From contig CM074823.1 in the NCBI GenBank assembly GCA_037447605.1, positions 496,001 through 560,000 of the forward strand: a stretch of 64,000 nt of DNA, written 5' to 3'. The translations under genes were made by a program, and so were the position numbers. Positions 833 through 48,459 of the stretch are shown here, piece after piece. The notes beneath the pieces were generated by a model. It saw only the letters and a program-made list of their open reading frames with translations, had not been told where the DNA came from and ran no database searches. Numbering within the stretch: position 1 is the first letter of the stretch; the number at the start of each line of letters is the position of its first letter. The DNA comes from Zygnema circumcarinatum SAG 698-1b (taxonomy: Eukaryota; Plantae; Zygnematophyceae).

Positions 833-3148
833 CACAACTGCCCTGGTCACGAACATAGTCGAAAAGGTTGGACCAATCGACCGAATCGGGGACGTCGGTG
901 ACGCTCTCGAACCGAAAATTTTTGTTCAAATTTTTAACGGAGAGGGAGCGCTGATAGGAGTACTCGAGATTGAATTGGAGCCCAGAAGTGAAATTATTTT
1001 TGAGGGACAAAGCAGAGGGCGGAGGGGGGCTGAACCCGGTCGGGCAGTTCACCAATTTTGGAATATCGCAATGGCCGGAATTTTGGTCATACAAAAGAAT
1101 TCCGTCACATTTATCCGAACCCACTTGGGTGTTGTTCACACACGTGCAGAAAAATCTGCAAGAAAAAGAAAAAGGGGGAAAAAAAATTGAAGAAAAATGG
1201 AGTGCAGGGAAGGAGAGGGAGAGAGGAAAGAGAGACGGGGTTTAGGGTTTTTAGGGTTTGACTTGGGATCCTGAGTTGTCAGAAACCCTAGAATTTTTTG
1301 AATATCAAGACGCAGAGATTACAGTGGTAGTGACTCTCTCCCTCTCCCATCCACTATCTCTCTCTCGCTCTTTCTCTCTCCCTCTCTCTCTCTCTCTCTC
1401 CCCCTCCCCCTCCCCCTCTCTCTCTTTCTCTCTCTCTCTCTCCCTCTCTCTCTCTCTCTCTGTCTCTCTCTCACCCTCTCTCGCTCTCACTCTCTCTCTC
1501 TCTTGCGCTTTCTCTCTCTTTCTCCCCCTTTCCTCGAAACCCCTCCCCCTCCCCACCCTCCCTCCCTTCCCCCTCCCCACCCTCCCTCCCTCCGTGACGT
1601 CAGCACTACCTGCAGGGAGGCTGCTGCTTCACATCGGCAAAAGTTCCCGTTCCCTTTCCGTCGCAGCAGTTTGGAAAAATCTGCAGCAAAAAAAAAATTA
1701 TAGAAAATCCAAGAAACAAAAAATATTAATAACTCAACAAACTAACTCTTCGACTGCTATGATGCTTTTACTACTTTTCGAGAAACTTAGGGTTCGGAGA
1801 AATACACATTAAAAAAGGGTTTCAAATTCAGTTTTCACTTCTTAGAAAACCTTACGATTTAGAGTTTCAAAAAAAATCGTTTTTAGTTTGTTCATGGTAT
1901 TTTCTAAAAATTAAGATCTTTTGATCTTCAGGAGTTCCAATTTTTCCAAATTTTAGGGTTTCCTTAAAAGCTAAATTCCCTCCTTCCCTCCCCTGCCCTC
2001 CCTCCCCTCCTCCCTCCCTCCCCTTCCCTCCCTTCCATCCCCTGCCCTCCCTTCCCTTCCCTCCCTCCCTTCCCTCCCTTTCCCTCCCTCCCCTCCTCCC
2101 TCCCTCCCCTTCCCTCCCTCTTCTTCCCTCCCTCCCCTTCCCTCCATCCCTTCCCTCCCCTCCCTCCCTCCCCTCCTCCCTCCCTTCCCTTCCCTCCCTC
2201 CCCTTCCCTCCCCTCCCTCCACTCCCTCCCTCCCTCCCTCCCTTCCCTCCCTCCCCCTTCGCTCCCCCTAAAATCCTAAAACCTTACTTTTATTAATTTC
2301 ATCATTCATATTTCTGAGAAGTGAGAGGTCATTTTCTTACCGAGATCGGAGGAGGAGGCACTGCGGGAGGGAAGGGAGGGAAGGGAGGGAATGTGAGAGG
2401 AGAGGGAGAGAATGGAGAGAGAGAGAGTGAAGAGGGAGAGAGAGGAGAGGAAGAGGGAGGAGGAGGAGAGAGAGGAGAGGGAGGAGTTAATGGAATATTT
2501 TCGATCCCTACGTTGGAGATACTTCCGGGACTCGTCTCGGTCCCATTTAACTGCAAAGATGAGAAAAAAAAAAGAAAAAAGAAAAAAATGTAAATAGAAC
2601 AATATGAATATTCAAATTATAAACAGATTTACAAGAATCTAACCAACAAATATTCATATATAGATATATATTGCAGAAAGAAGAGAGGAACGAAAGAAGA
2701 AAGGGAGAGGAACGATGCGAGAGACGGAGAGAAAAGAGTAGAGCCGGTGAGAGAGCAAGAGATAGAGAGAGAAGAAAGAAAGAAATAAGTGACGAGAGAG
2801 TGGGAGAGAGGAGCGGAGGTGGGAGAGGACGCGTGGGAGGAGAGAGAAAGAGGGAACCGAGAGAGCGGGAGAGACAGACAGAAGGAGAGGCATGAACGAG
2901 AGAGAGACGAGAGAGAGAGAAGAGAGAGAGGGGCGGAGAGGGAAATGAGAGAGTAGACGAGAGGCAGAACAGAGAGGAGAGCGAGAGAAAGGGGAAGTGG
3001 TAGAGGGGAGAGGGAGAGCAGTCAGAAAGGACAAGAGAACTCAATGAAGACAGAAATGAAGAGGGAGGGAGAGAGTGGGAGGGGAGTGAGCTCGAGGATA
3101 CAAGAGAAGAACATGCCCTTCAATATGTACTTCAACTTCAGTCCCGTG

Positions 3149-3190
<42 letters not shown>

Positions 3191-3724
3191 NNNNNNNNNN
3201 CCTCCCTTCCATCCCCTGCCCTCCCTTCCCTTCCCTCCCTCCCTTCCCTCCCTTTCCCTCCCTCCCCTCCTCCCTCCCTCCCCTTCCCTCCCTCTTCTTC
3301 CCTCCCTCCCCTTCCCTCCATCCCTTCCCTCCCCTCCCTCCCTCCCCTCCTCCCTCCCTTCCCTTCCCTCCCTCCCCTTCCCTCCCCTCCCTCCACTCCC
3401 TCCCTCCCTCCCTCCCTTCCCTCCCTCCCCCTTCGCTCCCCCTAAAATCCTAAAACCTTACTTTTATTAATTTCATCATTCATATTTCTGAGAAGTGAGA
3501 GGTCATTTTCTTACCGAGATCGGAGGAGGAGGCACTGCGGGAGGGAAGGGAGGGAAGGGAGGGAATGTGAGAGGAGAGGGAGAGAATGGAGAGAGAGAGA
3601 GTGAAGAGGGAGAGAGAGGAGAGGAAGAGGGAGGAGGAGGAGAGAGAGGAGAGGGAGGAGTTAATGGAATATTTTCGATCCCTACGTTGGAGATACTTCC
3701 GGGACTCGTCTCGGTCCCATTTAA
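833..3724 (-). CDS. Partial multi-exon gene: Pro/Ser-rich linker + CBM14 (peritrophin-A/ChtBD2) chitin-binding domain + start of papain-family (C1A) cysteine protease; 3' exons lie left of the window
   Basis: GT-AG exons 2550-2341 (duplicated at 3724-3515), 1680-1610 and 1155-833 splice in frame (phases 0, 2, 1). Product: LNGTETSPGSISNVGIENIPLTPPSP...PPPPIS|IFPNCCDGKGTGTFADVKQQPPCR|FFCTCVNNTQVGSDKCDGILLYDQNSGHCDIPKLVNC...VTDVPDSVDWSNLFDYVRDQGSCG. Cys spacing C-x16-C-x5-C-x10-C-x12-C-x7-C fits CBM14; PDSVDW...RDQGSCG is the N-terminus of a mature papain domain. Start codon and catalytic Cys exon not seen. Confidence 0.8.
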
Positions 3725-4322
3725 CTGCAAAGATGAGAAAAAAAAAAGAAAAAAGAAAAAAATGTAAATAGAACAATATGAATATTCAAATTATAAACAG
3801 ATTTACAAGAATCTAACCAACAAATATTCATATATAGATATATATTGCAGAAAGAAGAGAGGAACGAAAGAAGAAAGGGAGAGGAACGATGCGAGAGACG
3901 GAGAGAAAAGAGTAGAGCCGGTGAGAGAGCAAGAGATAGAGAGAGAAGAAAGAAAGAAATAAGTGACGAGAGAGTGGGAGAGAGGAGCGGAGGTGGGAGA
4001 GGACGCGTGGGAGGAGAGAGAAAGAGGGAACCGAGAGAGCGGGAGAGACAGACAGAAGGAGAGGCATGAACGAGAGAGAGACGAGAGAGAGAGAAGAGAG
4101 AGAGGGGCGGAGAGGGAAATGAGAGAGTAGACGAGAGGCAGAACAGAGAGGAGAGCGAGAGAAAGGGGAAGTGGTAGAGGGGAGAGGGAGAGCAGTCAGA
4201 AAGGACAAGAGAACTCAATGAAGACAGAAATGAAGAGGGAGGGAGAGAGTGGGAGGGGAGTGAGCTCGAGGATACAAGAGAAGAACATGCCCTTCAATAT
4301 GTACTTCAACTTCAGTCCCGTG

Positions 4323-4365
<43 letters not shown>
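1975..4365. repeat. ~1.17-kb direct duplication around the 10-N gap at 3191-3200 (probable assembly overlap)
   Basis: Unique sequence and ORFs recur with a constant 1174-bp offset (e.g. 2306 vs 3480, 2547 vs 3721) and appear identical. Confidence 0.85.
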
Positions 4366-4613: not shown

Positions 4614-4890
4614 CAAATCCTCCTGCAGAAATCTGAAACTTTGCACAGTCGCCGCCGTTCCATGTGTGCCAAAAACGCCAAAATTCGGAAAATTTGTTCC
4701 GTTGTACAGGACGGTAAACAGAGCCAAAATGCCGCCAACGGAAATCAAGGAAATTTTTGCATGGAGCGTCAGTTTGGACCAACGGAATCCGTTGCAGCTG
4801 ACGGAGTGGCCTCCATGGGAACACATTTTCGCATGCTCGCAGTTCTGTGAAACCCCACGCTCACTTCCGATCCGTTGGTAAATGAAAACC
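4614..4890 (-). other. Candidate upstream exon of the CBM14-protease gene
   Basis: Unique-sequence island with a phase-0 GTAAAC donor at 4613, followed on the sense strand by a GA-then-CT intron like the others. An open frame (...VLYNGTNFPNFGVFGTHGTAATVQSFRFLQEDL) would join exon 3724 in phase. No recognisable domain; acceptor or start not established. Confidence 0.3.
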
Positions 4891-15978: not shown

Positions 15979-18161
15979 GCGGTTTCTGAGTTGGGATATA
16001 TACTGCGCTGCACCTCGCAGAGAGGGCGCAAGAGTTGGCCCGCAGTGTGGGAGCGGAGGCCATCCCTCTCTCCGACCTGCGGGAGGCTCCCCCCGCGGGA
16101 GAGGGAGGGAGAGGGCCCGTCCTCGCGAACACGACCTCTGTGGGCATGCACCCTCACGGAGACGAGATTCCCGTGCCGCCGGTGAGCCCAAGGGGGGGCT
16201 GGTTTGTGGGTTGTGGGTTGTGGGTTGTGGGTTGTGGGTTGTGGGTTGTGGGTTGTGGGTTGTGGGTTGTGGGTTGTGGGTTGTGGGTTGTGGGTTGTGG
16301 GTTGTGGGTTGTGGGTTGTGGGTTGTGGGTTGTGGGTTGTGGGTTGTGGGTTGTGGGTTGTGGGTTGTGGGTTGTGGGTTGTGGGTTGTGGGTTGTGGGT
16401 TGTGGGTTGTGGGTTGTGGGTTGTGGGTTGTGGGTTGTGGGTTTTGATGGATTTTCTCGACCTCCCTCCCTCCCCTCCTTCGTCCCTCCTCCCCTCCGTC
16501 CTCCCTCCCTCCTCCTCTCTCCTTCCTCCCCACTCTCCTTCCTCTCCCTTTCTCCTCACCTCCCTCCCTTCTCTCACCTCTTCTTCCCTCCTCCTCTTCC
16601 TCCTCCTCCTCATTACTCTCCTCCTCCCCTCCTCCCTCCCTCCCCCTCCTTCCCTCCCCTCCCCCCTTCCTCCCCATCCCTCCTCCTCCTCCTCTCCCTC
16701 CCTCTCTTTCCCTCTCCCTCCTCCTAACCCCTCCCTCCCATCCTTCCCCTTCTTCCCTCCTTTTCCTCCCTCCCCCTCTACTGCTCCTCCTCTTCTTCCT
16801 TCTTTCTCCCTCCCTCCCTCCATTTACCCTCCTCCCTCCTCCATTTACCCTCCTCCTCCCTACTCCCCTCCTCTTTCTTCCCTCCCTCCTTACTCTTCCT
16901 CTCCTCCCTCCCTCCCTCCCTGGGTGGCCAGTCTTGTCTCTCCGGGTGGGCCGCCGTGTTCGACGCGGTGTACACGCCCATGCGCACGGCCCTCCTCCTC
17001 GAGGCCGCCGCCCGCGGGGCCGCGCCGGTCAGCGGGGTCGAAATGTTCGTCGGGCAGGCGGCCGCGCAGGTCCGCCTCTTCACGGGCAGGGCAGGTCCGT
17101 ACATGCGTCAGCCCTACACCCGCAACCCTACTGAACCCTAAACCCAACTAAACCCTAAACCCTACTAAACCCTACACCCTACTAAACCCTAAACCCTACT
17201 AAACCCTAAACCTTACTAAACCCTGAACCGTACTAAACCCTAAACCCAACCAAACCCTAAACCCTACTAAACCTGAACCCAACTTAACCCTAAACCCAAC
17301 TAAACCCTAAACCCAACTAAACCTGAACCCTACTAAACCCTGAACCCTACTAAACCCTAAACCCTACTAAACCCTAAACCCTACTAAACCTGAACCCTAC
17401 TAAACCCTGAACCCTACTAAACCCTAAACCTTACTAAACCCTGAACCCTACTAAACCCTAAACCCAACTAAACCCTAAACCCTAAACCCTACTAAACCTG
17501 AACCCAACTTAACCCTAAACCCAACTAAACCCTAAACCCAACTAAACCTGAACCCTACTAAACCCTGAACCCTACTAAACCCTAAACCCTACTAAACCCT
17601 AAACCCTACTAAACCCTGAACCCTACTAAACCCTAAACCCTACTAAACCCTAAACCCTACTAAACCCTAAACCCTACTAAACCCTACTAAACCCTAAACC
17701 CTACTAAACCCTAAACCCTACTAAACCCTGAACCCTACTAAACCCTAAACCCTACTAAACCCTAAACCCTACTAAACCCTGAACCCTACTAAACCCTTGC
17801 TCCGCCCTGCACCCTAAACCATACTGAACTCTAAACTCTAAAACCTTAAATTCTAAAGCCTAAACCTGACACCTTCAACCAACCTTAAAACCTGAACCCT
17901 AAATCGTAAACTCTTAACCCTAAACCTTACTAAACCCTAAACCCTACTAAACCTTAAACCCTAATCCGTCCCCCTTCCTTCCGCCTCAAGCCCAAAACCC
18001 CATTTTGAAGGGGCACAATTTTCTTCCCTTTTTTTTTCGAGTGCTTGTACTTTGATTGTTCTGTACTTCAATTTAACAGTTCTATGTTTTTTTTCTCCGT
18101 TTCTGTTGCAGCTCCCGTTGACCTGATGAGGGAAGTCGTCGTACGGAGTTTGACCCCTTGA
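12929..18161 (+). CDS. EMB3004: Bifunctional 3-dehydroquinate dehydratase / shikimate dehydrogenase (plant DHQ-SDH type); internal exons missing in the N gap
   Basis: Exons 12929-13128 ([12 protein letters not shown]...ADVMEFRLD...LPAIVTYR), [gap 13887-13987], 14509-14626 ([23 protein letters not shown]), 14991 (or 14943)-15125 ([30 protein letters not shown]), 16021-16181 ([12 protein letters not shown]), 16932-17094 (VFDAVYTP...[10 protein letters not shown]), 18112-18161 ([16 protein letters not shown]). All are GT-AG with consistent phases. Confidence 0.93.
16204..16443 (+). repeat. Perfect (TTGTGGG)n telomere-variant array, ~34 copies, intronic
   Basis: Direct reading; begins ~22 nt after the DHQ-SDH donor at 16182. 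Confidence 0.95.
17125..17962 (+). repeat. Degenerate interstitial telomere-like array (AAACCCT interleaved with AAACCCTACT), intronic
   Basis: Direct reading; fills most of the last DHQ-SDH intron. Confidence 0.9.
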
Positions 18162-20680: not shown

Positions 20681-23600
20681 TCCCTCTCCCTCTCTCTCTC
20701 CCTCTCTCTCTCCCTCTCCTCCTCGTTGTGAAGACGCTCCACCCAAGCATTGTTGACTCCTATTTTCTCCTTCACCCCATTTTCAGCAATCCCATTTTCT
20801 GGTATTTGGGTATCTCCTTCCATTGGGAGAGTCTCTCCTGCTAAAGGACAAATTTCTTTCAGAGGAAAAAACTGTACCTCTGAAAGGAGTTGTGTTCCCT
20901 CTAATTGTGAAGGATGTGGAGCCTCTCCCTCTCCCATACACTGAGAAGGAGGCCCTCTCTCTCTCCTGTCTCCTCTCTCTTCTCTCTCTCCTTGCTCTCT
21001 TCTCTCGTTCTCTCTCACTCCTCCCTCTTGTGGTTCTGTCTCTCCTTCATCCTCATGCCCTCCTCCTTCCCTCTCTCCTTCCTCCCTTTCTGAACCCCCC
21101 CCATCCTCTCCTTCTTCTCCTCTCTCTCCCTTCCCCTCCGCTCCGTCCTGTTCAGTATCTCCTTCATCCCCTCCCTCTTCCTTTCTCTCTCCTCCTTTCT
21201 GTTCCTTATCTCCCCCATCCTCTCCTCCTCCCGCGGGTTCCGTCTCTCCTCCCATCTCTCCCTCTCCTCCCTCTCCCTCTCCCTCTCCCTCTCCCACTCC
21301 CACTCTCTCTCTCTCTCCCACTCGCACTCCCCCTCTCACTCCCTCTCCCTCTCCCGCTCCCTCTCCCTCTCCCTCTTCCTCTCCCTCTCCTCCACCTCCC
21401 TCTCCCTCTCCCTCCATCTGTGTATCCCCCTCAGCATCTACCAGATCTGCCACCTGTCCCTGTTCCATGTGCTCGATCCCTTCCGTACGACCACACTCAG
21501 CCGCCGTTCCATGTCGGAAAACTCCGTTCAGTTCCGTTGCCCTTTCTGTTACCGGCTTTGTTGCAGTTTCTATGCTTGTTCGTTTTACGGTTTCAGTTTC
21601 GTCCTCAGTTTCGTCCTCCAAATTCCGAATAAGAGTCTGCATTTGTTCCTGCAATCGAATTTGAAGAGTCGAAATTTCCGAAGCAGATGCGTGAAACGCC
21701 CGCAACTGAGTTTCTCTGTGAACAAAATCACAAAAAAAAAAAAAAAAATTATAAAAGAGAATCAGAATTGATCCCTGAATTAATCGTTTCAGACAATATT
21801 TAAAAAAAAAAAAAAAAAAAATTAACGACTTCGTATTTTACCGTAACATGATTTTTTCTTTGGCTCCCTCCAATCGATGTTGTTCCATAGAAAGGCTCCG
21901 GATATATGCGGCGTTCCGTTCCGTTGAAATTTTTATTTGGAGCTCCGCCGCATGGAGAGAGGCCTGAGAGGGAAGCACTGAGAGGAGGAGTTAAGGGAGG
22001 GAGAGGAGAGGGAGGGAGAGGAGGAAGGAGAGAGGAAGAGAAGGAGAGAGAAGCAGAGGGAGGATAGGGAGAAGAGGGAGGGGAGGAGGAGTGGAGAGGA
22101 GAGGGCGGAGCAGGGAGCGGAGGAGGAGAAGAGAGGAGGGAGAGGGAGGAGTAGGAGAGAAAGGACAGGGAGGAGGGGAGGGAGAGGGAGGAGGAGAGAA
22201 AGGAGAGGGAGGAGAGGTGGGAGAGGGAAAGGACAGGGAGGAGGGGAGGGAGAGGGAGGAGGAGAGAAAGGAGAGGGAGGAGAGGTGGGAGAGGGAGGAG
22301 GAGAGGAAGGAGGAGGTGGGAGGGGAGGAGGAGAGAAAGGAGAGGGAGGAGAGGTGGGAGAGGGAGGAGGAGAGAAAGGAGAGGGAGGAGAGGTGGGAGA
22401 GGGAGGAGGAGAGAAAGGAGAGGGAGGAGAGGTGGGAGAGGGAGGAGGAGAGAAAGGAGAGGGAGGAGAGGTGGGAGAGAGGTGGGAGAGGGAGGAGGAG
22501 AGAAAGGAGAGGGAGGAGAGGTGGGAGAGGGAGGAGGAGGGAAAGGAGAGGGAGGGGAGAGGTGGGAGAGGGGGAGGTGGGAGAGGGAAGGAGGGGGAGG
22601 AGGAGGAGGGGTGGGAGAGGGAGGAGGAGAGAAAGGAGAGGGAGGAGAGGTGGGAGAGGGAGGAGGAGAGAAAGGAGAGGGAGGAGAGGTGGGAGAGGGA
22701 GGAGGAGAGAAAGGAGAGGGAGGAGAGGTGGGAGAGGGAGGAGGAGAGAAAGGAGAGGGAGGAGAGGTGGGAGAGGGAGGAGGAGAGAAAGGAGAGGGAG
22801 GAGAGGTGGGAGAGGGAGGAGGAGAGAAAGGAGAGGGAGGAGAGGTGGGAGAGGGAGGAGGAGAGAAAGGAGAGGGAGGAGGGAGGAGAGGTGGGAGGAG
22901 GAGGAGAGGAGAGGGAGGAGAGGTGGGAGAGGGAGGAGGAGAGAAAGGAGAGGGAGGAGAGGTGGGAGAGGGAGGAGGAGAGAAAGGAGAGGGAGGAGAG
23001 GTGGGAGAGGGAGGAGGAGAGAAAGGAGAGGGAGGAGAGGTGGGAGAGGGAGGAGGAGAGAAAGGAGAGGGAGGAGAGGTGGGAGAGGGAGGAGGAGAGA
23101 GAGGTGGGAGAGGGAGGAGGAGAGAAAGGAGAGGGAGGAGAGGTGGGAGAGGGAGGAGGAGAGAAAGGAGAGGGAGGAGAGGTGGGAGAGGGAGGAGGAG
23201 AGAAAGGAGAGGGAGGAGAGGTGGGAGAGGGAGGAGGAGAGAAAGGAGAGGGAGGAGAGGTGGGAGAGGGAGGAGGAGAGAAGGAGAGGTGGAAGGAGAG
23301 GTGAGGGAGAGGGAGGAGGAGAGAAAGAGAGGAGAGGGAGGAGAGGTGGGAGAGGGAGGAGGAGAGAAAGGAGAGGCAGGAGAGGTGGGAGAGGGAGGAG
23401 GAGAGAAAGGAGAGGCAGGAGAGGTGGGAGAGGGAGGAGGAGAGAAAGGAGAGGGAGGAGAGGTGGGAGAGGGAGGAGGAGAGAAAGGAGAGGGAGGAGA
23501 GGTGGGAGAGGGAGGAGGAGAGAAAGGAGAGGGAGGAGAGGTGGGAGAGGGAGGAGGAGAGAAAGGAGAGGGGGAGGGGAGGAGGAGAGAAAGAGAGGGA

Positions 23601-26600
23601 GGATAGGGAGAAGAGGGAGGGGAGGAGGAGTGGAGAGGAGAGGGCGGAGCAGGGAGCGGAGGAGGAGAAGAGAGGAGGGAGAGGGAGGAGTAGGAGAGAA
23701 AGGACAGGGAGGAGGGGAGGGAGAGGGAGGAGGAGAGAAAGGAGAGGGAGGAGAGAGAAAGGAGAGGGAGGAGAGGTGGGAGAGGGAGGAGGAGAGAGGA
23801 GAGGTGGGAGAGGGAGGAGGAGAGAAAGGAGAGGGAGGAGAGGTGGGAGAGGGAGGAGGAGAGAAAGGAGAGGGAGGAGAGGTGGGAGAGGGAGGAGGAG
23901 AGAAAGGAGAGGGAGGAGAGGTGGGAGAGGGAAGAGAGAGAAAGGAGAGGGAGGGGAGGTGGGAGGGGGGGGAGGAGAGAAAGGAGAGGGAGGAGAGGTG
24001 GGAGAGGGAGGAGGAGAGGAAGGAGAGGGAGGAGAGGTGGGAGAGGGAGGAGGAGAGAAAGGAGAGGGAGGAGAGGTTGGAGAGGGAGGAGGAGAGAAAG
24101 GAGAGGGAGGGAGAGGTGGGAGAGGGAGGAGGAGAGAAAGGAGAGGGAGGGAGAGGTGGGAGAGGGAGGAGGAGAGAAAGGAGGGGGAGGAGAGGTGAGA
24201 AAGGAGGAGAGGGGGAGGAGAGGTGGGAGAGGGAGGAGGAGAGAAAGGAGAGGGAGGAGAGGTGGGAGAGGGAGGAGGAGAGAAAGGAGAGGGAGGAGGA
24301 GAGGTGGGAGAGGGAGGAGGAGGAGGAGAGAAAGGAGAGGGAGGAGAGGTGGGAGAGGGAGGAGGAGAGAAAGGAGAGGGAGGAGAGGTGGGAGAGGGAG
24401 GAGGAGAGAAAGGAGAGGGAGGAGAGGTGGGAGAGGGAGGAGGAGAGAAAGGAGAGGGAGGAGAGGTGGGAGAGGGAGGAGGAGAGAAAGGAGAGGGAGG
24501 AGAGGTGGGAGAGGGAGGAGGAGAGAAAGGAGAGGGAGGAGAGGTGGGAGAGGGAGGAGGAGAGAAAGGAGAGGGAGGAGAGGTGGGAGAGGGAGGAGGA
24601 GAGAAAGGAGAGGGAGGAGAGGTGGAGAGGGAGGAGGAGAGAGAGGGAGGAGAGGTGGGAGAGGGAGGAGGAGAGAAAGGAGAGGGAGGAGAGGGAGAAG
24701 AGGGAGAAAGGAGAGGGAGGATAGGGAGAAGAGGGAGGGGAGGAGGAGTGGAGAGGAGAGGGCGGAGCAGGGAGCGGAGGAGGAGAAGAGAGGAGGGAGA
24801 GGGAGGAGTAGGAGAGAAAGGACAGGGAGGAGGGGAGGGAGAGGGAGGAGGAGAGAAAGGAGAGGGAGGAGAGGTGGGAGAGGGAGGAGGAGAGAAAGGA
24901 GAGGGAGGAGAGGTGGGAGAGGGAGGAGGAGAGAAAGGAGAGGGAGGAGAGGTGGGAGAGGGAGGAGGAGAGAAAGGAGAGGGAGGTGGGAGAGGGAGGA
25001 GGAGAGAAAGGAGAGGGAGGAGAGGTGGGAGGGGAGGAGGAGAGAAAGGAGGGAGGAGGGGTGGGAGAGGGAGGAGGAGAGAAAGGAGAGGGAGGGAGAG
25101 GTGGGAGAGGGAGAGGAGAGAAAGGAGGAGGAGGAGAGGGGTGGGGAGAGGGAGGAGGAGAGAAAGGAGAGGCAGGAGAGGGAGAGGAGGAGAGAGAAAG
25201 GAGAGGGAGGAGAGGGAGAGGGAGGAGGAGAGAAAGGAGAGGGAGGAGAGGTGGAAGAGAGGAGGAGGAGGAGAGAAAGGAGAGGGAGGAGAGAGAAAGG
25301 AGAGGGAGGAGAGGTGGGAGAGGGAGGAGGAGAGAAAGGAGAGGGAGGAGAGGTGGGAGAGGGAGGAGGAGAGAAAGGAGAGGGAGGAGAGGTGGGAGAG
25401 GGAGGAGGAGAGAAAGGAGAGGGAGGAGAGGTGGGAGAGGGAGGAGGAGAGAAAGGAGAGGGAGGATAGGGAGAAGAGGGAGGGGAGGAGGAGAGGAGGA
25501 GAGGGAGGAGGAGGGAGAGGGAGGAGAAAGGAGAGGGAGGGAGAGGGAGGAGAGGAGAGAAAGGAGAGGGAGGGAGAGGTGGGAGAGAGGGAGGAGGAGA
25601 GAAAGGAGAGGGAGGAGAGGTGGGAGAGGGAGGAGGAGAGAAAGAGAGGGAGGAGAGGGGGAGGGAGGAGAGAGAAAAGGAGAGGGAGGAGAGGTGGGAG
25701 AGGGAGGAGGAGAGAAAGGAGAGGGAGGAGAGGTGGGAGAGGGAGGAGGAGAGAAAGGAGAGGGAGGAGAGGTGGGAGAGGGAGGAGAGGGGGGAGGAGA
25801 GGTGGGAGAGGGAGGAGGAGAGAAAGGAGAGGGAGGAGAGGTGGGAGAGGGAGGAGGAGAGAAAGGAGAGGGAGGAGAGGTGGGAGAGGGAGGAGGAGAG
25901 AAAGGAGAGGGAGGAGAGGTGGGAGAGGGAGGAGGAGAGAAAGGAGAGGGAGGAGAGGTGGGAGAGGGAGGAGGAGAGAAGGGGGGGAGGGGAGGGGGGG
26001 GAGAGGGAGAGAGGAGGAGGAAGGGGAGGGAGGAGAGGTGGAAGAGGGAGGAGGAGAGAAAGGAGAGGGAGGAGAGGTGGGAGAGGGAGGAGGAGAGAAA
26101 GGAGAGGGAGGAGAGGTGGGAGACGGAGGAGGAGAGAAAGGAGAGGGAGGAGAGAGGAGGGGTCATGTAGGTGGTCACCTGACTCATCTGCAGCTCACTG
26201 TTCACACGTGCGAAGTTTCCCTCAGCCTCTTCAAACCTCTGTTTCAAAGCCACCCCCAAAGAAAAAAAAATACAAAAATAAATAAACAAACAAGATAACA
26301 TAGAATAAAAAAACAATGACATACAAATGTATCGTGAGATTTAAATCAGAATCGCCGCGCTTTTTAAAATTCATCTATCCAAATTGTCCGTCGTTATATA
26401 TTCTATGCTTATCTTTTTACTTGTTTTATTATTTTTTTTTCATGTTTTGTATTTTCCAGTCGGATAAAAATAGAACCTTGACAGCCGAAGCAGAGGCCTC
26501 TCTCTCTCCCTCCAAAAGCTTCCCCAAATGACGCTCTCTCTCCTGCGCCGCTACCACCGCCTCTCTCTCCCTCTCCTGCACTCGCAGGAGGGAGAGTGGT

Positions 26601-28723
26601 CAGAAAGAGAGAGGGGGAGGGAGTGGGAGGGAGAGAGAGAGGGGTCAATGAGAGAGAGAGGGAGGGAGAGAGAGAGGTCAGCGAGAGAGAGAGAGAGCAA
26701 GGGAGAGAGAGCGAAAGAGAGAGATCAGAGAGAGGGATCATAGAGAGAGGGAGGGAGAGAGAGAGAGGTCAGAGAGAGTAAGGGAGGGAGAGAGAGAGGT
26801 CAGAGAAAGAGAGGGAGGGAGAGAGAGAGGGAGAGAGGGAGTGGTCAGAGAGAGAGAGGCTCCTCCCCAAGAGAAAGTCTCCTCCCTCACCAGCTTCCCT
26901 CGCAGCGCTTCCACGAGGACGCTCTGTTTTTGCTCCGCCGCCTGCTTGCACCCTCGCACGTGTGAGCCTGTCATTTGATTCGCTCAATTCATAATTTTTT
27001 TCTTTTATTCTCCCCTGACCCTAAACCCGAAACCCTAAACTTTAACCCTAAACCCTAAATCCAAAATCCTAAATCCTAAACCCTACACTCTAAACCCTAA
27101 ACCCTAAACCCTAAACCCTACACTCTAAACCCTAAACCCTAAACCCTANNNNNNNNNNACCCTACACCCTACACCCTACACCCTACACCCTACACCCTAC
27201 ACCCTAAACCCTAAACCCTAACCCCTAAACCCTAAACCCTACACCCTAAACCCTAACCCCTAAACCCTACACCCTAAACCCTAACCCCTAAATCCTAACC
27301 CTTAACCCCTTAAACCCTAAACCCTAAACCCTACCTTTGCATTCTCCACCTGCTCCTGTAGTTGCCTTTGCGCTTTTTGAGCTGCTTCCGCCCTCCTCCC
27401 CATCTCCTCCTCTGCCCCCAATCGGAGTCTCTCTACCACACTCCTCTTCTCTCCCTCTGCCTCCTCTCTCTCTCTCTCCCTCTCTCTCTGCTCCTCCTGA
27501 ACTCTCCTCTTTAGCTCCGCAACTTCGTTCTTCTGCCTGCAGTTGGGGTCATCATATAAATATCATCAGAATATGTATAAATTTATTTAAATACTCATTT
27601 GCTTACTTAGTAATTTAGTCCTTAAGTTATTCTCTCTCCCCTATCGCTCCCTCCCTCGCCCCTCACTCCTCCCCTGCCCCTTTCAGTCTGCCTGACTCAC
27701 TCCCTCTCTCATCAACCTCCCTCTCCCACCTCTCTCTTCCCCCCTTCCCCTCCCTCTCTCACCGACCACCCCTTTCCGCCCCCCTCCCTTCTCTTCCCCT
27801 CCCTCTCCCCCAACCTCGCTCCCCTCCCCCTCCCCCTCCCCCTCTCCCTCCTCACCCACCCTCTCTTCCCTCTCCCTTCCTCCTCCCCCTCTCTACTTTT
27901 CCGCCTCCCTCTCCCCTCCCTCTCTCCCCTCTCTCTTCCCCTCTCTCTCTCCCATCTCTCCTCTCTCTGTCCTCTCCTTCCCTTCTCTCTCTCCCCTCTC
28001 TCCCCCCTCTCACTCTCCCCTCTCTCTCCCCCCTCTCTCTCTGCCCTCTCTTTCCCCTCTCTCTCCCCTCTCTCTCCCCTCGCTCTCTCCCCTCTCTCTC
28101 TGCCCTCTCTCCTTCCCCTCTCTCTCTCCCCTCTCACCCCCCTCTCTCGCCCCTCTCTCTCTCTCTCCTCTATATCTCTCCCTTCTCTCTCTTCCCTCTC
28201 TCCCCTCTCTCTCTCTCACCTCTCGATTACTGCCTCCGCCTCCTCTCTCGACTGCGCCGCTATCGCCATCCTCTCCCGCAGATCCTCCAACTCGCTCTCC
28301 CTCTCCGCCACGTGTCCTGCTCTCATTCGCGCCTCACACGTCATCTTCTCCTTCTCCTCCTCCGCTCTCTCCCACTTCTCCCTCCACTCTCTCTCAATCT
28401 CCGCACATGCCTCCTGCAGAGCCTGCTTCAAAAAAATCAAAATAAATAAAGAAATAACAGCTGATAACAAAATTTTCAAGTATTAAAGAAAATTAGGATA
28501 GTACGATCAGCATAACTGGTAGGAATGTACGGGAGGAGTTTCTTCACTTTATTTTATTTTATTTTCTTTATGTTAGATAAAAGTTAGGGTTTCCTCACGA
28601 GAGAGTGCTTCTCCTGCACACTTCGCTGAGCCAATGTCATCTCCTCCGACTTTTTCGATTCCACTTCCAATTGCTGCCTTAGATCCTGTCCATCAGAGAG
28701 AGGGAGAGAGAGAGAGAGAGAGG

Positions 28724-28774
<51 letters not shown>

Positions 28775-31606
28775 AGGGAGAGACAGAGACACACAGAGAG
28801 GGAAGACAGGAGAGTGAGAGAGAGGGGAGGGGAGGGGGAGGGGCATCAAGAGGGGGGGAAGAAAAGAGAGAGAGAAGAGAGGAGAGAGAGGGGAGGGGAG
28901 GGGGGAGGGGCGGGAGAGAGAGAGAGTGAAGAGATAGGGGAGGAAACAGGAGGGGGAAGGGGGGAGACAGAGAGAGAGAGAGATGAGAGAGAGGGCAGGG
29001 GAGGGGGGAGGGGGAAGAGAGAGAGGGGAGGGGAGGGAAGGGGGAAGGGAGAGAGGGAGAGAGTAAAAATAGATATAGGGAAAGAATGTATCTCTCCCTC
29101 CCCCCGTTTCTCAAAAACCTCGGTCAGCAACGGCAGAATTTCCCGAAAATAAAGAAAAATCTAAAACCCGAAAGAAAAAAAAAAAAAAAGGGGTTACAAA
29201 AAATTCTGTATGCATCTAATCTTGACTTTTTATTTCATCTTGGATTTTACCTCATTGGCTTTTTGAAGGGAGCGAAATTCGGCCAATGAGACGACGCCAT
29301 CTGGCGCGGCAGATCCGACCAATCGGAGCCGCTTTCCTTCCGTTTTTGTCTCTTCTGCGAGAGGAAGAGTTGGCTCCTCCGATTCTGTCGGCCCATAGAG
29401 GAGAGAGAGAGAGAGTGAGTCACTCACTCCCTCTTACTCTCTCTCTCCCTCTCTCTTTCACTTCACCCTCTCTCTCTCCCTCTCTCGCACTCTCTCCCTC
29501 CATTCTCTTTCTCTATTAACCTCTCCCTCCTGCCCTCGTCCTGTCTAAATCTCTCTCCCACTCACTCTCTCTCTCGCTCTTCCTCTCTCATTCACTCTCT
29601 CTCTCTCCCTCTCTCGGTCCCCCTCTCTCCCACTCTCTCCCTCCATTCTCTTTCTCTGTTAACCTCTCTCTCCTGCCCTCGACCTGTCTAAACCTCTCCC
29701 CCTCTCCCTCTCCCTCCTCTCCCTCATGCCTGAAACCCCAAAGAGCTTCACCCCCCAAACCTTAACCCCTAACCCTAAACCCTAAACCCTAAACCAGAAC
29801 CCTAAACCCTAAACCTCAAACCCTAACCCCTAAACATTAAACCCTAAACCCTCACTTGAGAAGGACAGCCTCCGCTTCAATGACTTTGACGCTGACACGG
29901 GCAGAGACGATATATCTCGATACACAAAGGAGAGCGCCGGATCTGCATACACACATCAAGGATGAAAAAAAAACAAAAAAATGTAAGGAGAAAGTGGGAA
30001 GTACAAGTGGAGTCAAAGTCTGATGGATCACAAAAATGTTGTGATTTTAAGCGAGACACAAAAGAAGTGCAGATTCTCTCTCTCTCTCTCTCTCTCTCCC
30101 TCTCACTCTCTCACACTCTCTCTCTAATCCTCTCCCACTTCCTCTCCAATTGTCCTCCCTGCCCCCCTCCGTCTCCCTCCTCCCATCCTCCCTCTCCTCC
30201 TTACCCACTCCACCTTCCCTCCCTGCCCTCTCCTTTTCCCCTCCCTCTGCCTCTCCCTACCGCCCTCTCCCCTCACGCCTCTCCCTCTCTCCCTCCATCT
30301 CCACGCATACCTAGCCCTTCTCCCTCTCCCCTTCCTCCCTCCCTGCCCCTACATTTCCCTTTCCCTCCCCTCTCCCTCTCCCTCCCCTCTCCTCTCTTCC
30401 ACTCCCTCTCCCAATTTCCCCCTCCCTCGCCCCTCTTACCTCTCTCCTCCCCCCCTCTCTATCTCCCTGTCCCTCTCCCTCCCCCCCTTCAATTTCCTTC
30501 TCCCTCTCCCTCTCTCCACTCCCCCTCTCTCCCACTCCCTCTCCCTTTCCCTTTCCCTCCCCTCTTCCTCCCCCTACCCTCTCCTTCTCTCCTCCTTCCT
30601 CTATCCTCCCCTCCCCTCACCCTCTCCCTCTCCCATTCCCTCTCCCTCCCCTCTCCCTGTTCTCCCCCCCTTCCCCTCTCCTCCCCCCCTCTCACCCTCT
30701 CCCTCTCCCTTTCCCTCTCCCTCCNNNNNNNNNNCTCTCCCTCTCCCTTTCCCTCTCCCTCCCCTCTCCCTCTTCTCTCCCCCTTCCTCTCTCCTCCCCC
30801 CCTCTCACCCTCTCCCTCTCCCGTTCCCACTCCCTCCCCTCTCCCTCGTCTCCCCCCCTTCCTCTCTCCTCCCCCCCGCTCACCCACTCCCTCTCCCATT
30901 CCCTCTCCCTTTCCTCTCCCTCTTCTCCCCCCTTCCTCTCCCTCCCCCCTCTCCCTCTCCCTCTCCCTCTCCCCCCCCTCTCAACACCCCTCCCTCTCTC
31001 CCTCTACCTGCCACATTCTCTCCCACCACAATCCCCGGCAACGCCACCAGCGACAGCACGTCTCCATGTCTCAGTTCCACCTCCGTTCCGTTCCGTTCCA
31101 GCCGCGTTCCGTTGATCCATGTCCCGTTCGAACTGCAGTCCTTCACCCACACCTCAAATTCGTCCGAATTTTTTAAATTTTGGCGCCGAAAAATTTTACA
31201 ATGTCGCCCGCTGACGGCGGCGGCATCGAATCCGTACGGCCCCGCGGCGCCGCGGCCCAAACAGTGCTGCTCCGCCCTCAGAACTATGTCGGGGCCCTGC
31301 AGACAAACAAAGGGCATCGATTTTTCAATAGATTAAAAAAACATCTAAAAAAATAAGGAAGAGTAAAAATCAACATTTTTTGTTTTTCTAACGTTAAGAG
31401 TTTAACAATTTTTTTCGGGAAAAAAAGAAAAAAAAAAAAAACCCCTCGCACACCTGAGAGCGTTCAATGGCTGCCGTGGAGAGAGCGGTGAGGAGGCCCC
31501 ATTGGCCGGGGGTGACAGCTGTCACGGGCTGCTTGGCGAGGCCCAAGGCAGCGTTCCGTATGGAGAGAAACCCGGCGATGGGAGAGGAGGGGGGGGAGGG
31601 AGACAT
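19729..31606 (-). CDS. FHA-domain / long coiled-coil protein resembling Arabidopsis At2g45460 (SMAD/FHA family), 12 exons
   Basis: Exons 31606-31454, 31296-31008 (FHA: HCLGRG...[11 protein letters not shown]...[13 protein letters not shown]...LRHGDVLSL), 29942-29856, 29384-29251 ([14 protein letters not shown]), 28685-28599, 28422-28220, 27536-27335, 26941-26891, 26575-26477, 26238-26179, 21963-21842 ([13 protein letters not shown]), 21715-19729 ([15 protein letters not shown]...). All phases are consistent. The last exon crosses two 10-N gaps, so its internal structure is less certain. Confidence 0.88.
22060..26160 (+). repeat. ~4.1-kb purine-rich 39-bp minisatellite (GGAGAGGGAGGAGAGGTGGGAGAGGGAGGAGGAGAGAAA) in FHA-gene intron 10
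   Basis: The 13-aa period [13 protein letters not shown] in the ORF track matches a 39-bp unit. A longer interrupting block recurs at ~22060, ~23600 and ~24720. Confidence 0.9.
27020..27332 (+). repeat. Interstitial (CCCTAAA)n / (CCCTACA)n array in FHA-gene intron 7
   Basis: Direct reading; on the sense (minus) strand it starts at the donor itself (AAG|GTAGGGTTTAGGG). Contains a 10-N gap. Confidence 0.9.
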
Positions 31607-39143: not shown

Positions 39144-42100
39144 TTAGTCCGATGGAATTTCCACTTCCATTTTCACGCTCGATCCAAGAACCTGCGGAAA
39201 TAAAAAAAGACGTTAAGAAAACATTCCAAATTTAAAGGAAAAACTTAGCCACCTTGCTATATTCAGATAGCAACCCCCTTAAAGCCCATTTATGCCCCAT
39301 ATGCACCCCTTTTTATACTCCATTTGGACCCCGTTTATAGCCCATACTATACCCCATATGTACCCCAGTTTATACCCCATTTGTATACCCCATATATACC
39401 CCATTTATACCCCATTTATACCCCATTTATACCCCATTTATATCCCATTTATACCCTATAAAAGGAGGAGAAAAACTGACTTGGCAGAAGTCCGAAAAGG
39501 AGAGGGAGCAGTCCTGAGGGAAGCCGGCTTCGAGCAGAGCGCGGGACGCAACTTTCTGGAAAGGGACAGGTTAATGGCGTGAGGTGGGAGGGAGAGAGAC
39601 AGAGAGAGAGAGGGGGGGAGAGAGGGAGAGAGAGGGGGAGAAAGAAAGAAAAAGCGAGAGTCAGAGGGAGAGAGAGAGAGAGGGAGGGTGAGGGGGGAGG
39701 GGACAGAGAGAGAGAGCGGGGAGAGATGGAGGGGGGGGGAGAGGGGGTGCGGAGAGAGGAAGAAAGAGGGAGAGATAGAGGGGGAGAGAAGGGGGTGAAG
39801 GGAAGAGAGACAGGGGAGAGGGAGAGAGGAGGGGTGAGAGAAGAAAGAAGGAGAGGGTGAGGGGGGGCGCAGAGAGAGAGAGCGGGGAGAGAGATGGAGG
39901 GGGGGAGAGAGGGGTTGCAGAGAGGGAGAAAGAGAGAGAGATAGAGGGGGAGAGGGGGGGCAGGGGGAAGAGACAAGGGGGAGGGAGAGAGGAGGGGTCA
40001 GTGAAGAGAGAGGCACGGGGGAAGAGAGGGAGAAAAAAGGGAGAGGTGGGGAGGGAGGAAGAGAGAGAGGGAGGAAGGCAGAGGGGGAAAGGGGCGAGAG
40101 AGTGATTGGAAGAAAGTGAACGAAAGAAAGACCCCTCTCCCTCTCTCTCTCCCCCTAGCTCTCTCCCTCCCCCTCTCTCCCTCTCTCCTTCTCCCTCTCT
40201 CCTCTCTCTCTCCCCCTCACTCGCCCTCCCTCTATCTCCCTCTCTCTCTCCCAATATCTCTCCCTCTCTCTCCCTATCTCTCCCTCTCCCTCTCTCTCTC
40301 CCTCTCTCCCTCTCTCTCTCTCTCCCTCTCTCTCTCCCTCTCTCCTCTCTATCTCCCCCTCACTCGCCCTCCCTCTCTCTCTCCCAATATCACCCTCTCT
40401 CTCTCCCAATATCACCCTCTCTCTCTCTCCCTCTTATCTCCCCCTCTCTCTCCCCCCTCTCTCTCCCTCTCTCTCCCTCTCCCTCTCTCTCTCTCCCTCT
40501 CTCTCTCTCTCTCAGTTTCTACCTGGCGCTGCTCATCCGACAGGAAGGATCCGGAGAGATCACGGAGGACCGATTCTATGTCCTCCCGAGAGACACGTCC
40601 GTTTCCGTCGACGTCGTAAAGACGGAAAATGACTGCATGGAACCGCCGTTCAGTTTCACTTCCAGTTTCAGTTCCAGTGCTAAAATCCGTTACACGACTC
40701 GGCAGACATTCTCCCATACACTTCTAGAACCCCAAAATGTCTAATCTCAACAAATAAGAAGAAAAAAAAAAGTTAAATAAAAATGAACTGAATGAAATGA
40801 TAATCAAAGAAGTAAATAAAACTTAGTAACTCAATTTAGAACGAATAAAATTATGGTTAAAATTAGGGTAAGAAGGACTCACGGCGAACTTTATCTTCAG
40901 AACTCGCTTTGGCACTAAACGCCGAAAGTAGCGCCACGAAGTCTTTGAAATTTACTGCTTCCAACATTCGCAGCAGCCTCTGCAATAGCCAAAGAAGTCA
41001 ACAAAGTCAAACCCAGTCAAGCAAAGTCGGCAAAGTCAAAGAAGTCTAGAAAGGCAAAGAAGTTTAGAAAGTCTTCGAAGTCAAGAATGTCAATGAACTT
41101 AGAACACTAAAGCAGGAGGGAAAAGGGGAAGGACATGAGGGAGGCAGCGGTGAGAGACCAAGAGAGAGAGAGGGGGGCAGAGAGGGAGAGATAAGGAGAA
41201 AGAGGGAGGGAGATAGAGAGGCGAGAAAGAGAGGCGAGAAAGTGAGAGGGAGAGGGGGTGAGAGACCGCGAGAGAGAGAGAGAGAGGGAGAGAGAAAGGG
41301 AAAGAAGCGAGAGAATGAGAGAGAGACGAGAAAGAGAGAGGGAGAGATCTTTACGGTTTCTAGGGCTACTAGGGTCATTCCAACAATACTTTGATTCATC
41401 AGTAGACATTATTCAGTTTAGTCAATCAATCGGTTAGTCATTAGTCATTTCTTAATCCCTAAACCCTAAAACGGGAGCGCTAAACCCCAAAACCTAAACC
41501 CTAAACCCTAAACCCCTAAAACACTAAAACCCTAAAACCCTAAAACCATAGAACCCTAAAACCCTAAAACCCTAAAACCCTAGACCCACCTGCGCGAGCG
41601 GGTTGAGAGCAAATTCCGGAATGGCCATGAACTCGTCCGCCGTGATGTAGCCCTTCCCGCTGCGATCAAGGGCGCAGAATCGCTCATAGAGCGCCACAAT
41701 TTCCTGTTGGGAAACTGAACGGAAACGGTAACAGAAAACCAACATGTGAACGAACACACATGGTTAGAAAGGCCATCCGAGGTTTTGTAAGTGCAGTATT
41801 TTTCTGCTTCGATGCATGAGAGACCAGAGAACATGCATACATACAAGTATGAGGGAGGGAGGGAAGGGAGGGGAGGGAGGGGAGGGAGGGAGGGAGGGAG
41901 GGAGGGAGGGAGGGAAGGAGATGGCATGCATGGAGTCCATCCACTGATTCTCTGCATGCATACTCTCATACCCCCTTGAATGCATGACCTGACCACATGC
42001 ATGCACGCATGACATGACAGCCTGCATGGAAGCTATGATGTATGCATGCATGACATGACCACATGCAAGCATAACACGACAAACATGCATGGAGCTCATG

Positions 42101-45943: not shown

Positions 45944-48459
45944 ATGGGGGTGCCGGAGTGGTTCAGAGGATTTCTGCGGAGGAGATCGTCATCGAAGAAG
46001 GGGAAAGGAGGGAAGCAGGTACTGAGATGTGAAGGAGAGAGAGGAAGGCAGGGTGGGAGGCAGGGTTAGGAAGGAAGGGAGGGAGGGAGGGAGGGAGGGA
46101 AGGGGGAGAAGGAGGGAGGGAGGGAGGGAGGGAGGAGGGGGGAGGCAGGGAGGGAGGGAGGGGAAGGATGGAAAAGGAGAGGAAGAGGGGAAGGGGGGGA
46201 GGTGATGAGGGAGACGGAGGGGAAGGGGGAAAGGAAGTGGAGGGAGGGAGAGAGAGGGGAGGGACTACAGGGGGAGGGGGGTGAGGGGAAGAAGGGGTAA
46301 GAGGAGAGGTAGGGGAAGGGGATGAGAAGAGAGAGGGAGGAGAAGGGAAAGGAAGGGTGAGACGTGAAGGGAGAGGGCTATGGGAAAAGGAGGGGGGAAA
46401 GGAGTTGCGGAGGGGGATGGAGGGAAGGATGGAGGAGAGAGAGGGAAAGGGAGGGAGAGGGGGTGGAGGTAGATATAGGAATAGTGGCTGTGGATGGAGC
46501 ATGCGGGCTGAAATTATAGAGTTAAAGGCAGTTGGAGAAGGAAAGGGAGAGGGAGGTGAGAGGGAGAAAGACGGGGCGGAGGGATAGGTGGCTGAGGGAG
46601 AGCGAGGGGGAAGGGGGGGAGAAGGGAGATGGCGGTGTTGGTAACGGCTGGGAGACAGGAGGGAGGTGAGAGGCCGATGAGAGAGAGAGATGGGAGGGAA
46701 ATGAGGGAGCGAGGAAGGAGGTCAGGAAAAAGCGAGAAGTGAGGTAACGGTTGGTGGAGTGTGGGAGGGGGGAGAGAGAGTGAGGTAGAGAGTGAGAAAG
46801 AAAACGAGAGCTAGGGACAAAACGTTGGCGTGGCGATGGGATTCTGTGCTAGAGTAAGTTGGGGTGGGGAAAGGGTGAGAGGGGAGAAGAGGGAGTGGAG
46901 GGAGAGGAAAAGATGGAGAGGAGAGGAGAAATATTTGGGAATGAACTAGAAAGGGAGAGAGAGAATGTGTGAGGGAGATGGTGTAGAGTTGACGCAGTGT
47001 AACGTGAATTGCATACTGGTTACACTTATGTTGTGATAGGTACATCCTCGTTGCGTTCTGAGTGTACGTTCCTCCCTCCCTCTCTCCCTTCCTCCCTCCC
47101 TCCCTCCCTCCCTCCCTCCCTCCCTGCCTCCCCTCCCGCCGGCTCTCCCTCCCTACCTTCTGCAGACCCCGGAAGTACCCACCGCCCCTCCAACCGGAAC
47201 GACCCTCCTAAAGGGGTCCAAGAAAGGGGAGGCGCTACCGAGTGCCCCTAGAGACTCCCTTGTGGCGGGGCGGAATGGGGGCACATACGTACCCAAAAAT
47301 GGGTTTGAGCCAGGGATGTCTATGGAGGACTGGGCGGCGGTAAAGATACAGACGGCTTTTCGAGGCTACTTGGTATGCAATTTTTTCTTTTGCCTACCTT
47401 TCACTTCGTCCCTGGGATTCAATATAAATAAAGAAGTAATCAGCCTATCTTTACAGTTGTTTAAAAAGTTGATGAAGAATCGGATATAGCGTCTCTGTTG
47501 AAGAAGTGCGAGTGCTTGATATGCTTGTAACCGCATCGCCTCTTGATTCCTTTGCTGACAAGATATGAAAGAATCGATTTACGCTTCTAGTTTCAAGCCC
47601 AAATCCTTCAATTTGATGCTCTCTCTCGCTCTTCTCTCTAGCCCTACACATCTGTCATTCTGACTCTCCTTGTTCCTTTGCTTGTCCTTTCCTTTTCTGT
47701 CTCTCCTCCTCTCCCCTTTCCCTCTTTCTCTATCCCTCTCCCTCTGTCCACCCTCCCGCTGTCCTTTCTCCATTCATCCCTCTGCCCCTATTCCTCCTCC
47801 TCACTACCCCTCACTCCCCTCACCCCTCGCTCCCCCTCTCCCCCCTCTCNNNNNNNNNNGGGGAGCGGGTGGGAGGGGATGAGGGAAAGGGAGGGGAGGG
47901 AGAGAGGGTGGGAGGGGGGATTGGCCAGGGGGGGGAGGAGTGCGAGAAGGGGGGAGGAGCGATGGGGGGGAGGGGGAAGTGGATTAGGGAGAGGTAGTAA
48001 GGGGGAGACGGGGGCGGGGATGGGGGGTTAGATAAGGGAGTGGCGGTGAGTTGGGGGACAAGGGTGGAAGTGGGGGAGAGGGGAAGGTGAGTGAGGTTGG
48101 ACGCAGAGTGAGTGGGGGAAGGAGCTGGAGGTGGAAACGGGAGGGGTGGGTGGGGGGACGTCGAAGACGGTGTGAGAGAGGGAAGGTGGGGTGTGGGAGG
48201 TTGACGGTGGGGGAAGGTTCTTGATTGGAGTGGTCTTAGAGTCCTATTTTGGGGTTTTAGGTTTTGGGTCTCTTGCTTTGATCGTTTCAGCCATTGGGGC
48301 TCTGTCGCTCGCTCTCTCTCTCTCTTCTCTCCCGTCTCCCCACCTCCTTCCTTCCCCCTCTTCCTGCCCTCTCCTCTTTCCCCCTCTCCCCCTCCCCCCC
48401 CTGGCCCTTCCCCTCCCCCTCCCCCTCCGCCTCCGTTCCTCTCTCCTCCCTCCCTCCCT

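Follow-up and report, generated by a model that had tools for sequence, protein, structure and literature searches.

In plant immunity papain-like proteases have a central role, and their I29 prodomain is considered nearly universal. A locus of the streptophyte alga Zygnema circumcarinatum SAG 698-1b raises the question of whether a chitin-binding domain of the CBM14 family can stand in the place of that prodomain. The locus lies in a stretch of 64,000 nucleotides (nt) of contig CM074823.1 (assembly GCA_037447605.1, positions 496,001 to 560,000 of the forward strand). This whole stretch is hereafter called the window, and positions are given in its coordinates unless another contig is named. 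An earlier, sequence-only reading had described CBM14 fused directly ahead of a papain-like protease with no recognizable I29. Our analysis indicates that the window probably contains the 5′ portion of a genuine gene from a lineage-restricted family of secreted papain-fold proteins (MEROPS C1A, cathepsin-L-like), in which I29 is absent and is replaced by a proline/hydroxyproline-rich stalk and CBM14.

Exon structure of the gene

The gene lies on the minus strand, where three predicted exons, compatible in phase and bordered by canonical GT-AG sites, follow one another in the order A, B, C. Exon C (833-1155; 323 nt, phase 2 to 1; acceptor tcttgcag/ATT, donor TGTG/gtgagt, the slash marking the exon border) carries both modules. 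It encodes, in succession, the C-terminal two-thirds of CBM14 with four core cysteines and one extra (1044-1155), a short SPPPP hinge, GFSPPPPS (999-1043), a conserved 35-residue spacer with an N-x-T sequon, which is a candidate remnant of a propeptide tail (894-998), and the start of a papain-type mature domain, VPDSVDW...RDQGSC, together with the G that opens the next codon (833-893). The first 20 residues of the mature domain, VPDSVDWSNLFDYVRDQGSC (834-893), contain the C1A motif P-x-S-V-D-W ... Q-G-x-C. Since exon C encodes part of each, CBM14 and the protease cannot be separate genes, and the sequence-only reading was right to place the two together: the C-terminal two-thirds of CBM14 and PDSVDW...QGSC share this exon.

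Exon B (1610-1680; 71 nt, phase 0 to 2; acceptor tgctgcag/ATT, donor GCAG/gtagtg) encodes the N-terminal third of CBM14 (IFPNCC...PPC plus two bases), and its frame is fixed because the cysteine pattern continues into exon C. The intron between them (1156-1609; 454 nt) interrupts CBM14 behind the second core cysteine. Exons B and C also start alike, with seven identical bases past the acceptor (cag/ATTTTTC; minus-strand positions 1680 and 1155). Upstream of an intron of 660 nt (1681-2340) lies exon A (2341-2550; 210 nt, phase 0 to 0), which is internal and lacks a start codon; its borders are the acceptor ...tctttgcag/TTA behind a long pyrimidine tract and the donor TCG/gtaaga. Its translation would be an extensin-like Pro/Ser-rich stalk of 70 residues, among them 24 prolines and 16 serines, with SPPPP occurring once. 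This Pro-rich frame was chosen because it is the only one that is phase-compatible with exon B.

Downstream of exon C, the donor GTGAGT opens the next intron, whose start (1-832) consists of low-complexity GA/CT sequence interrupted by an N gap (494-503). No further exon was seen at positions 1-832, and the Peptidase_C1 exons of the relatives described below, used as tblastn queries, had no match anywhere in the window. The remaining protease exons lie past its left end. At the other end of the gene, a first exon might be sought at 4614-4826 (minus strand), where 71 codons run from ATG to TTG/gtaaac in phase 0. This candidate matched no Pfam family and has a single hydrophobic stretch, at residues 25-41, unlike a classic signal peptide.

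The CBM14 module and the missing I29 prodomain

Across exons B and C the cysteines are spaced C-x16-C-x5-C-x10-C-x12-C-x7-C, plus two extra ones; the same pattern, read here from the translations of the two exons, had been given by the sequence-only reading. Exon C alone matched positions 18-53 of the 53-position Pfam CBM_14 profile with 19.3 bits (E-value = 1.2e-3), the gathering cut-off being 22.1 bits. That the score stays slightly short of this value is due to exon B, which holds the first third of the domain. The homologous exon-C pieces of the two relatives, on contigs L003 and L001, scored 20.5 bits (E-value = 5.4e-4) and 22.3 bits (E-value = 1.5e-4), respectively. Comparison of an exon-C profile with PDB sequences gave a weak match to the CBM14 of chitinase 6g9c (E-value = 0.19), and the ESM Atlas clusters nearest to exon C were all arthropod CBM_14, with scores of 0.82-0.85 and none reaching 0.9. 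A regular-expression scan of the 64 kb in six frames produced no credible second CBM14 half-domain; the other matches were satellite translations.

I29 was matched neither in exons A-C (Pfam, E-values up to 10) nor in the tested open reading frames up to ~6 kb upstream of exon A (E-values up to 0.1), nor in exons 1 and 3 of L003 (E-values up to 1). This agrees with the sequence-only reading, which had recognized no I29 between CBM14 and the mature domain. In searches made exon by exon, the CBM_14 match stays below the cut-off on exon C, which holds a partial domain.

Relatives with the same layout

A HMMER search with exon C against 1.84 billion representative proteins returned ten matches, two of which were specific (P0001, E-value = 1.5e-11; P0002, E-value = 5.6e-10). 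Both are exon-sized open reading frame calls on short contigs from one sequencing run, and P0001 is also present in an ENA metagenome. The remaining matches (P0003-P0010) were rejected as kin, being generic CBM14, fn2 or bacterial immunoglobulin-like proteins, plus one repetitive protein that was left unscanned.

On the contig L003 (6.5 kb), the signal peptide, stalk, CBM14 exons and later Peptidase_C1 exons are found together. Its exon 1 (L003:3282-4211) encodes a classic signal peptide and, behind it, an extended tract rich in Gly/Pro and Pro/Ser, and the Pro-rich run ends in phase 0 just ahead of the CBM14 exon, paralleling exon A. Exon 2 (L003:4273-4343) has 71 nt and agrees with exon B of the window in length, phases and C-x16-C. 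Exon 3 (L003:4402-4754) encodes the remainder of CBM14 followed by a PPPP hinge, the spacer and LPSSVDW...RSQGSC; it ends in phase 1, and the codon split there is the one split in the window. The window and L003 agree in the position and phases of the intron inside CBM14. In L001, the equivalent of exon 3 is followed by a Peptidase_C1 exon, arranged as in L003. The exons downstream in the two contigs match Peptidase_C1 with E-values of 1.4e-7, 9.1e-6 and 1.8e-14, the first and the last of these coming from L003 (profile positions 26-90 and 165-212, respectively). The layout of stalk, CBM14 and C1 domain is conserved in another organism's genome.

The three exon-C homologues (window, L003 and L001) are 41-42% identical. 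Invariant in all three are four shared core cysteines (the comparison covers the cysteines of exon C only), the PPPP of the hinge, the N-x-T sequon, a set of spacer residues (N54, T56, G58, L59, R69, N79 and R81 in the three-way alignment, sequon residues included) and VDW..LF..VR.QGSC. One extra exon-C cysteine is common to the window and L001. As to the type of papain-fold domain, RDQGSC at first suggested cathepsin B, but this was rejected in view of the C1 exon of L003, whose best matches are structures of cathepsin-L-like proteins and dionain. Farther 3′ of the C1 exons, at L003:6146-6385, there is a cysteine-containing open reading frame of ~79 residues with no Pfam match, which may be a C-terminal accessory module unlike EGF or LysM.

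These relatives make plausible the secreted, stalked protein that the sequence-only reading had envisaged, L003 having both a signal peptide and a long Pro-rich exon; for the window copy, secretion would follow by comparison. Alignment-profile scans of JGI metagenome contigs, viral contigs and prokaryote genomes found no relatives. There is thus no sign of a viral or bacterial donor, since relatives are missing from the viral contigs and prokaryote genomes scanned.

The animal and fungal leaning of CBM14 raises another possibility, namely, that the segment is contaminating animal or fungal DNA. PMC5122149, which cites Chang and Stergiopoulos 2015, places CBM14 mostly in animals and fungi, and the arthropod neighbours in the ESM Atlas point the same way. 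Nevertheless, GA/CT satellites and plant-type AAACCCT repeats occur in the introns as they do elsewhere in the window, the SPPPP of the stalk is an extensin-like trait, and exon C has no close animal or fungal homologue; its only specific relatives have this algal-style architecture too. We therefore regard contamination as extremely improbable.

The spacer and the fate of CBM14

CBM14 is not fused directly to the mature domain, as had been proposed; the conserved spacer with its N-x-T sequon separates the two. To see what this spacer resembles, we turn to the comparison of the three-homologue profile with all PDB sequences. The profile matched the propeptide-to-mature junction in triticain-alpha 8zlq (E-value = 0.02), as well as that of procathepsin S (E-value = 0.14) and procaricain (E-value = 1.1), while the window sequence taken singly matched the junction of 5ef4 (E-value = 0.31). 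The propeptide-like part of these alignments covers, weakly, the last ~30 residues. The signal is weak but consistent: judged from these alignments, the end of the spacer looks like a leftover of a propeptide tail, the segment running through the active-site cleft.

In C1A enzymes, activation normally strips away all that lies N-terminal of the (L/V)P-x-S-V-D-W junction. Should the same processing apply here, as the weak alignment of the spacer end with propeptide tails would suggest, CBM14 would be lost when the enzyme is activated. Its role may therefore be to anchor or regulate the latent form before being shed, rather than to guide the mature enzyme. A stronger version of this idea is that CBM14 is a replacement prodomain, a folding aid or inhibitor that is discarded on activation, leaving a mature enzyme free of any chitin anchor. 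The habit of the family and the alignment of the spacer end fit it, and CBM14 does occupy the usual position of I29. Yet all six core cysteines are kept in the CBM14 of the window, and the four visible ones in each of the three exon-C homologues, and the long, glycosylatable stalk upstream better suits a surface-tethered module. A replacement prodomain of this kind is to us a tentative possibility, and we prefer to see in CBM14 a glycan-directed module that replaces I29 in position together with the stalk.

The nucleophile position

Both relatives have serine at the position of the catalytic cysteine. L003 and L001 each read QGSC-N-G-S-W-A-[YF]-S, and Pfam puts this serine on profile position 26 (L003:4820-4830 and L001:470-480). 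The codons, AGT and TCT, are each one step from TGT. L003 retains the catalytic histidine (VDHALL) and asparagine (NSWG). Because both nearest relatives carry serine for the catalytic cysteine, protease activity cannot be assumed. In addition, the N-G-S at the active site of L003 and L001 doubles as an N-glycosylation sequon.

One alternative is that the catalytic domain of the window copy is not a cysteine protease at all, but would likewise have serine at the nucleophile and act as a serine-nucleophile hydrolase or as a non-catalytic binder with a papain fold, CBM14 serving for glycan attachment. The agreement of the two relatives, the retained histidine and asparagine in L003, and the two serine codons, which lie so close to TGT as to suggest that serine is kept by selection, speak for this. 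Against it stands the codon that is split behind GSC: it starts with G in the window and with A (giving asparagine) in the relatives. The G fits the canonical C-G-S-C-W, although on sequence grounds it proves nothing. We judge a serine at the nucleophile of the window copy to be rather unlikely and retain the wider assignment to the papain fold.

Similarity to known protein families

Known plant papain-like proteases (MEROPS C1A; the zymogens of triticain-alpha, caricain and papain) share with the window the motif (V/L)P-x-S-V-D-W...Q-G-S-C and, in the zymogens, a propeptide-tail-like segment directly before the mature start. The window differs from them in that no I29 (ERFNIN) prodomain was detected and an N-terminal Pro-rich stalk with CBM14 is found instead. 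Moreover, its W and V-R-D-Q are separated by a shorter segment of unusual sequence (SNLFDY), and the relatives L003 and L001 depart from plant C1A enzymes by the serine at the nucleophile position. A parallel in domain arrangement is offered by RD21-type plant papain-like cysteine proteases, which carry a C-terminal Cys-rich granulin alongside I29. Both join a Cys-rich module to the protease through a Pro-rich linker, but that of the window is a CBM14 on the N-terminal side, where I29 would otherwise stand.

With the Peritrophin-A/CBM14 family (insect peritrophins, obstructors, C-terminal domains of chitinases, Cladosporium Avr4) the window shares the six-cysteine spacing and the Pfam CBM_14 match. 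Compared with these animal and fungal domains, the host lineage is of plant type, there are two extra cysteines, and the domain is split by a conserved intron. Furthermore, the module is N-terminal to a papain-fold domain rather than beside a chitinase or in mucin-like arrays. Serine at the nucleophile position of a papain-fold protein is itself known from Plasmodium SERA5 and sponge silicatein. L003 and L001 are alike to these in having serine for Cys25, with histidine and asparagine kept in L003, the kinship being one of fold family only.

CBM14 and C1A are each known families, and we found no paper on CBM14 in place of I29. Nor did we find any paper linking CBM14 to the Zygnematophyceae, peritrophin and papain-like proteins to an alga, or chitin binding and cysteine proteases to a streptophyte alga. 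Of the three papers naming both Peptidase_C1 and CBM_14, two appear to be insect transcriptome studies and one a proteobacterial domain survey.

Genomic context and integrity of the locus

Positions 2027-3190 and 3201-4364 are identical in 1164 of 1164 bases and flank an N gap at 3191-3200. The second stretch holds another copy of exon A (3515-3724, minus strand). The exact repeat most likely reflects two overlapping contig ends that were never merged, rather than a true duplication, so that this copy of exon A would not be a genuine duplicate. The overlap would also inflate the intron upstream of exon A.

Given such surroundings, the locus might be a dead fragment or an assembly artefact, that is, a 5′ remnant in satellite-rich DNA whose exon A is a mere open CT-rich tract. 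The window is indeed rich in low-complexity arrays and gaps, to which the exact repeat and the barren sequence at 1-832 may be added, and a second frame of exon A is open as well. Word-index protein searches, one with exon C (candidates of 59-187 residues) and one with residues 1-103 of the open frame 84-1139 (candidates of 193-614 residues), found no matches and hence no protein with exon C. Exons B and C, however, are intact, with every conserved cysteine and motif, consensus splice sites and conserved phases. Sequencing runs provide a further argument: runs from three studies contain about half (~0.5) of the sampled words from 800-2600, and a run from a fourth study (X1) contains 0.31 of them, approximately the exonic share, which is a weak hint of a spliced transcript. 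A dead or artefactual locus thus seems to us very unlikely, and we continue to treat it as part of a real gene.

The window has other features of note. AAACCCTAA, a plant-type telomere-like sequence (AAACCCT repeats), has 72 exact matches, 0.64 being expected. They form interstitial arrays at 17150-17965, 27030-27327, 29777-29847 and 41461-41575, plus scattered sites, and single copies occur within the introns of the CBM14 gene (801, 1242, 1251 and 1953). A homopurine satellite of ~4.1 kb (21994-26161) consists of ~104 copies of a 39-bp unit with 85% matches, its GC skew being 0.98-0.99 and its AT skew 0.87-0.88. Comparable purine- or pyrimidine-pure blocks occupy much of the window, the introns of the CBM14 gene included. 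Exons of other genes were recognized by an FHA domain (30883-31332, minus strand; Pfam E-value = 6.3e-14) and by an IQ calmodulin-binding motif (47040-47486, plus strand; Pfam E-value = 1.1e-3). The stretch AAVKIQTAFRGYL of the IQ exon resembles plant IQD proteins.

Discussion

Taken together, the shared exon C, the intron inside CBM14 at the same position in L003 and the continuation of the relatives into Peptidase_C1 exons argue for a papain-fold family in which stalk and CBM14 replace I29. Several points weigh against this interpretation. Only 20 residues of the protease are within the window, and the catalytic residues are outside it. The CBM_14 match of exon C is under the Pfam cut-off and concerns a partial domain, and an AlphaFold 2 model of exon C built from the three-row alignment was uninformative, with a predicted local distance difference test score (pLDDT) of 43. 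The propeptide-tail matches are weak, with E-values from 0.02 to 1. The proposed splice junctions and exon A have sequence logic and comparison as their basis, and the openness of exon A is no evidence in itself, given the second open frame in its CT-rich tract. A start codon and signal peptide of the window copy were not found. Finally, with serine at the nucleophile in both nearest relatives, the word protease may not fit the whole family.

Secretion of the window copy, glycan binding, a zymogen role of the spacer and catalytic competence are what we infer for this gene. In the mechanism that we propose, the protein would be secreted, and its stalk and CBM14 would keep the latent form on a polymer containing N-acetylglucosamine. 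This polymer could belong to an attacker, as the chitin of a fungus or chytrid, or to the alga itself, as a glycan of its wall. Until cleavage near VPDSVDW, the active-site cleft would be occupied by the propeptide-like tail; the cut would free the catalytic domain from CBM14. One may extend this to a broader scenario, in which CBM14 took the place of I29 in papain-fold zymogens of streptophyte algae, latency and release became coupled to a chitin-bearing surface, such as the wall of a parasite, and the nucleophile switched from cysteine to serine more than once. We put this forward as a speculation that is unlikely to hold in full.

The window contributes a partial copy only, and its own weight is modest. 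A swap of I29 for a chitin-binding domain in the sister lineage of land plants would nonetheless indicate an alternative mechanism of latency in papain-like proteases. The same swap would indicate early chitin recognition in the plant lineage by a module that is neither LysM nor hevein. The relatives with serine for cysteine bear on the change of nucleophile on a fixed fold and, if the assignment is true, would constitute a natural experiment in nucleophile exchange.

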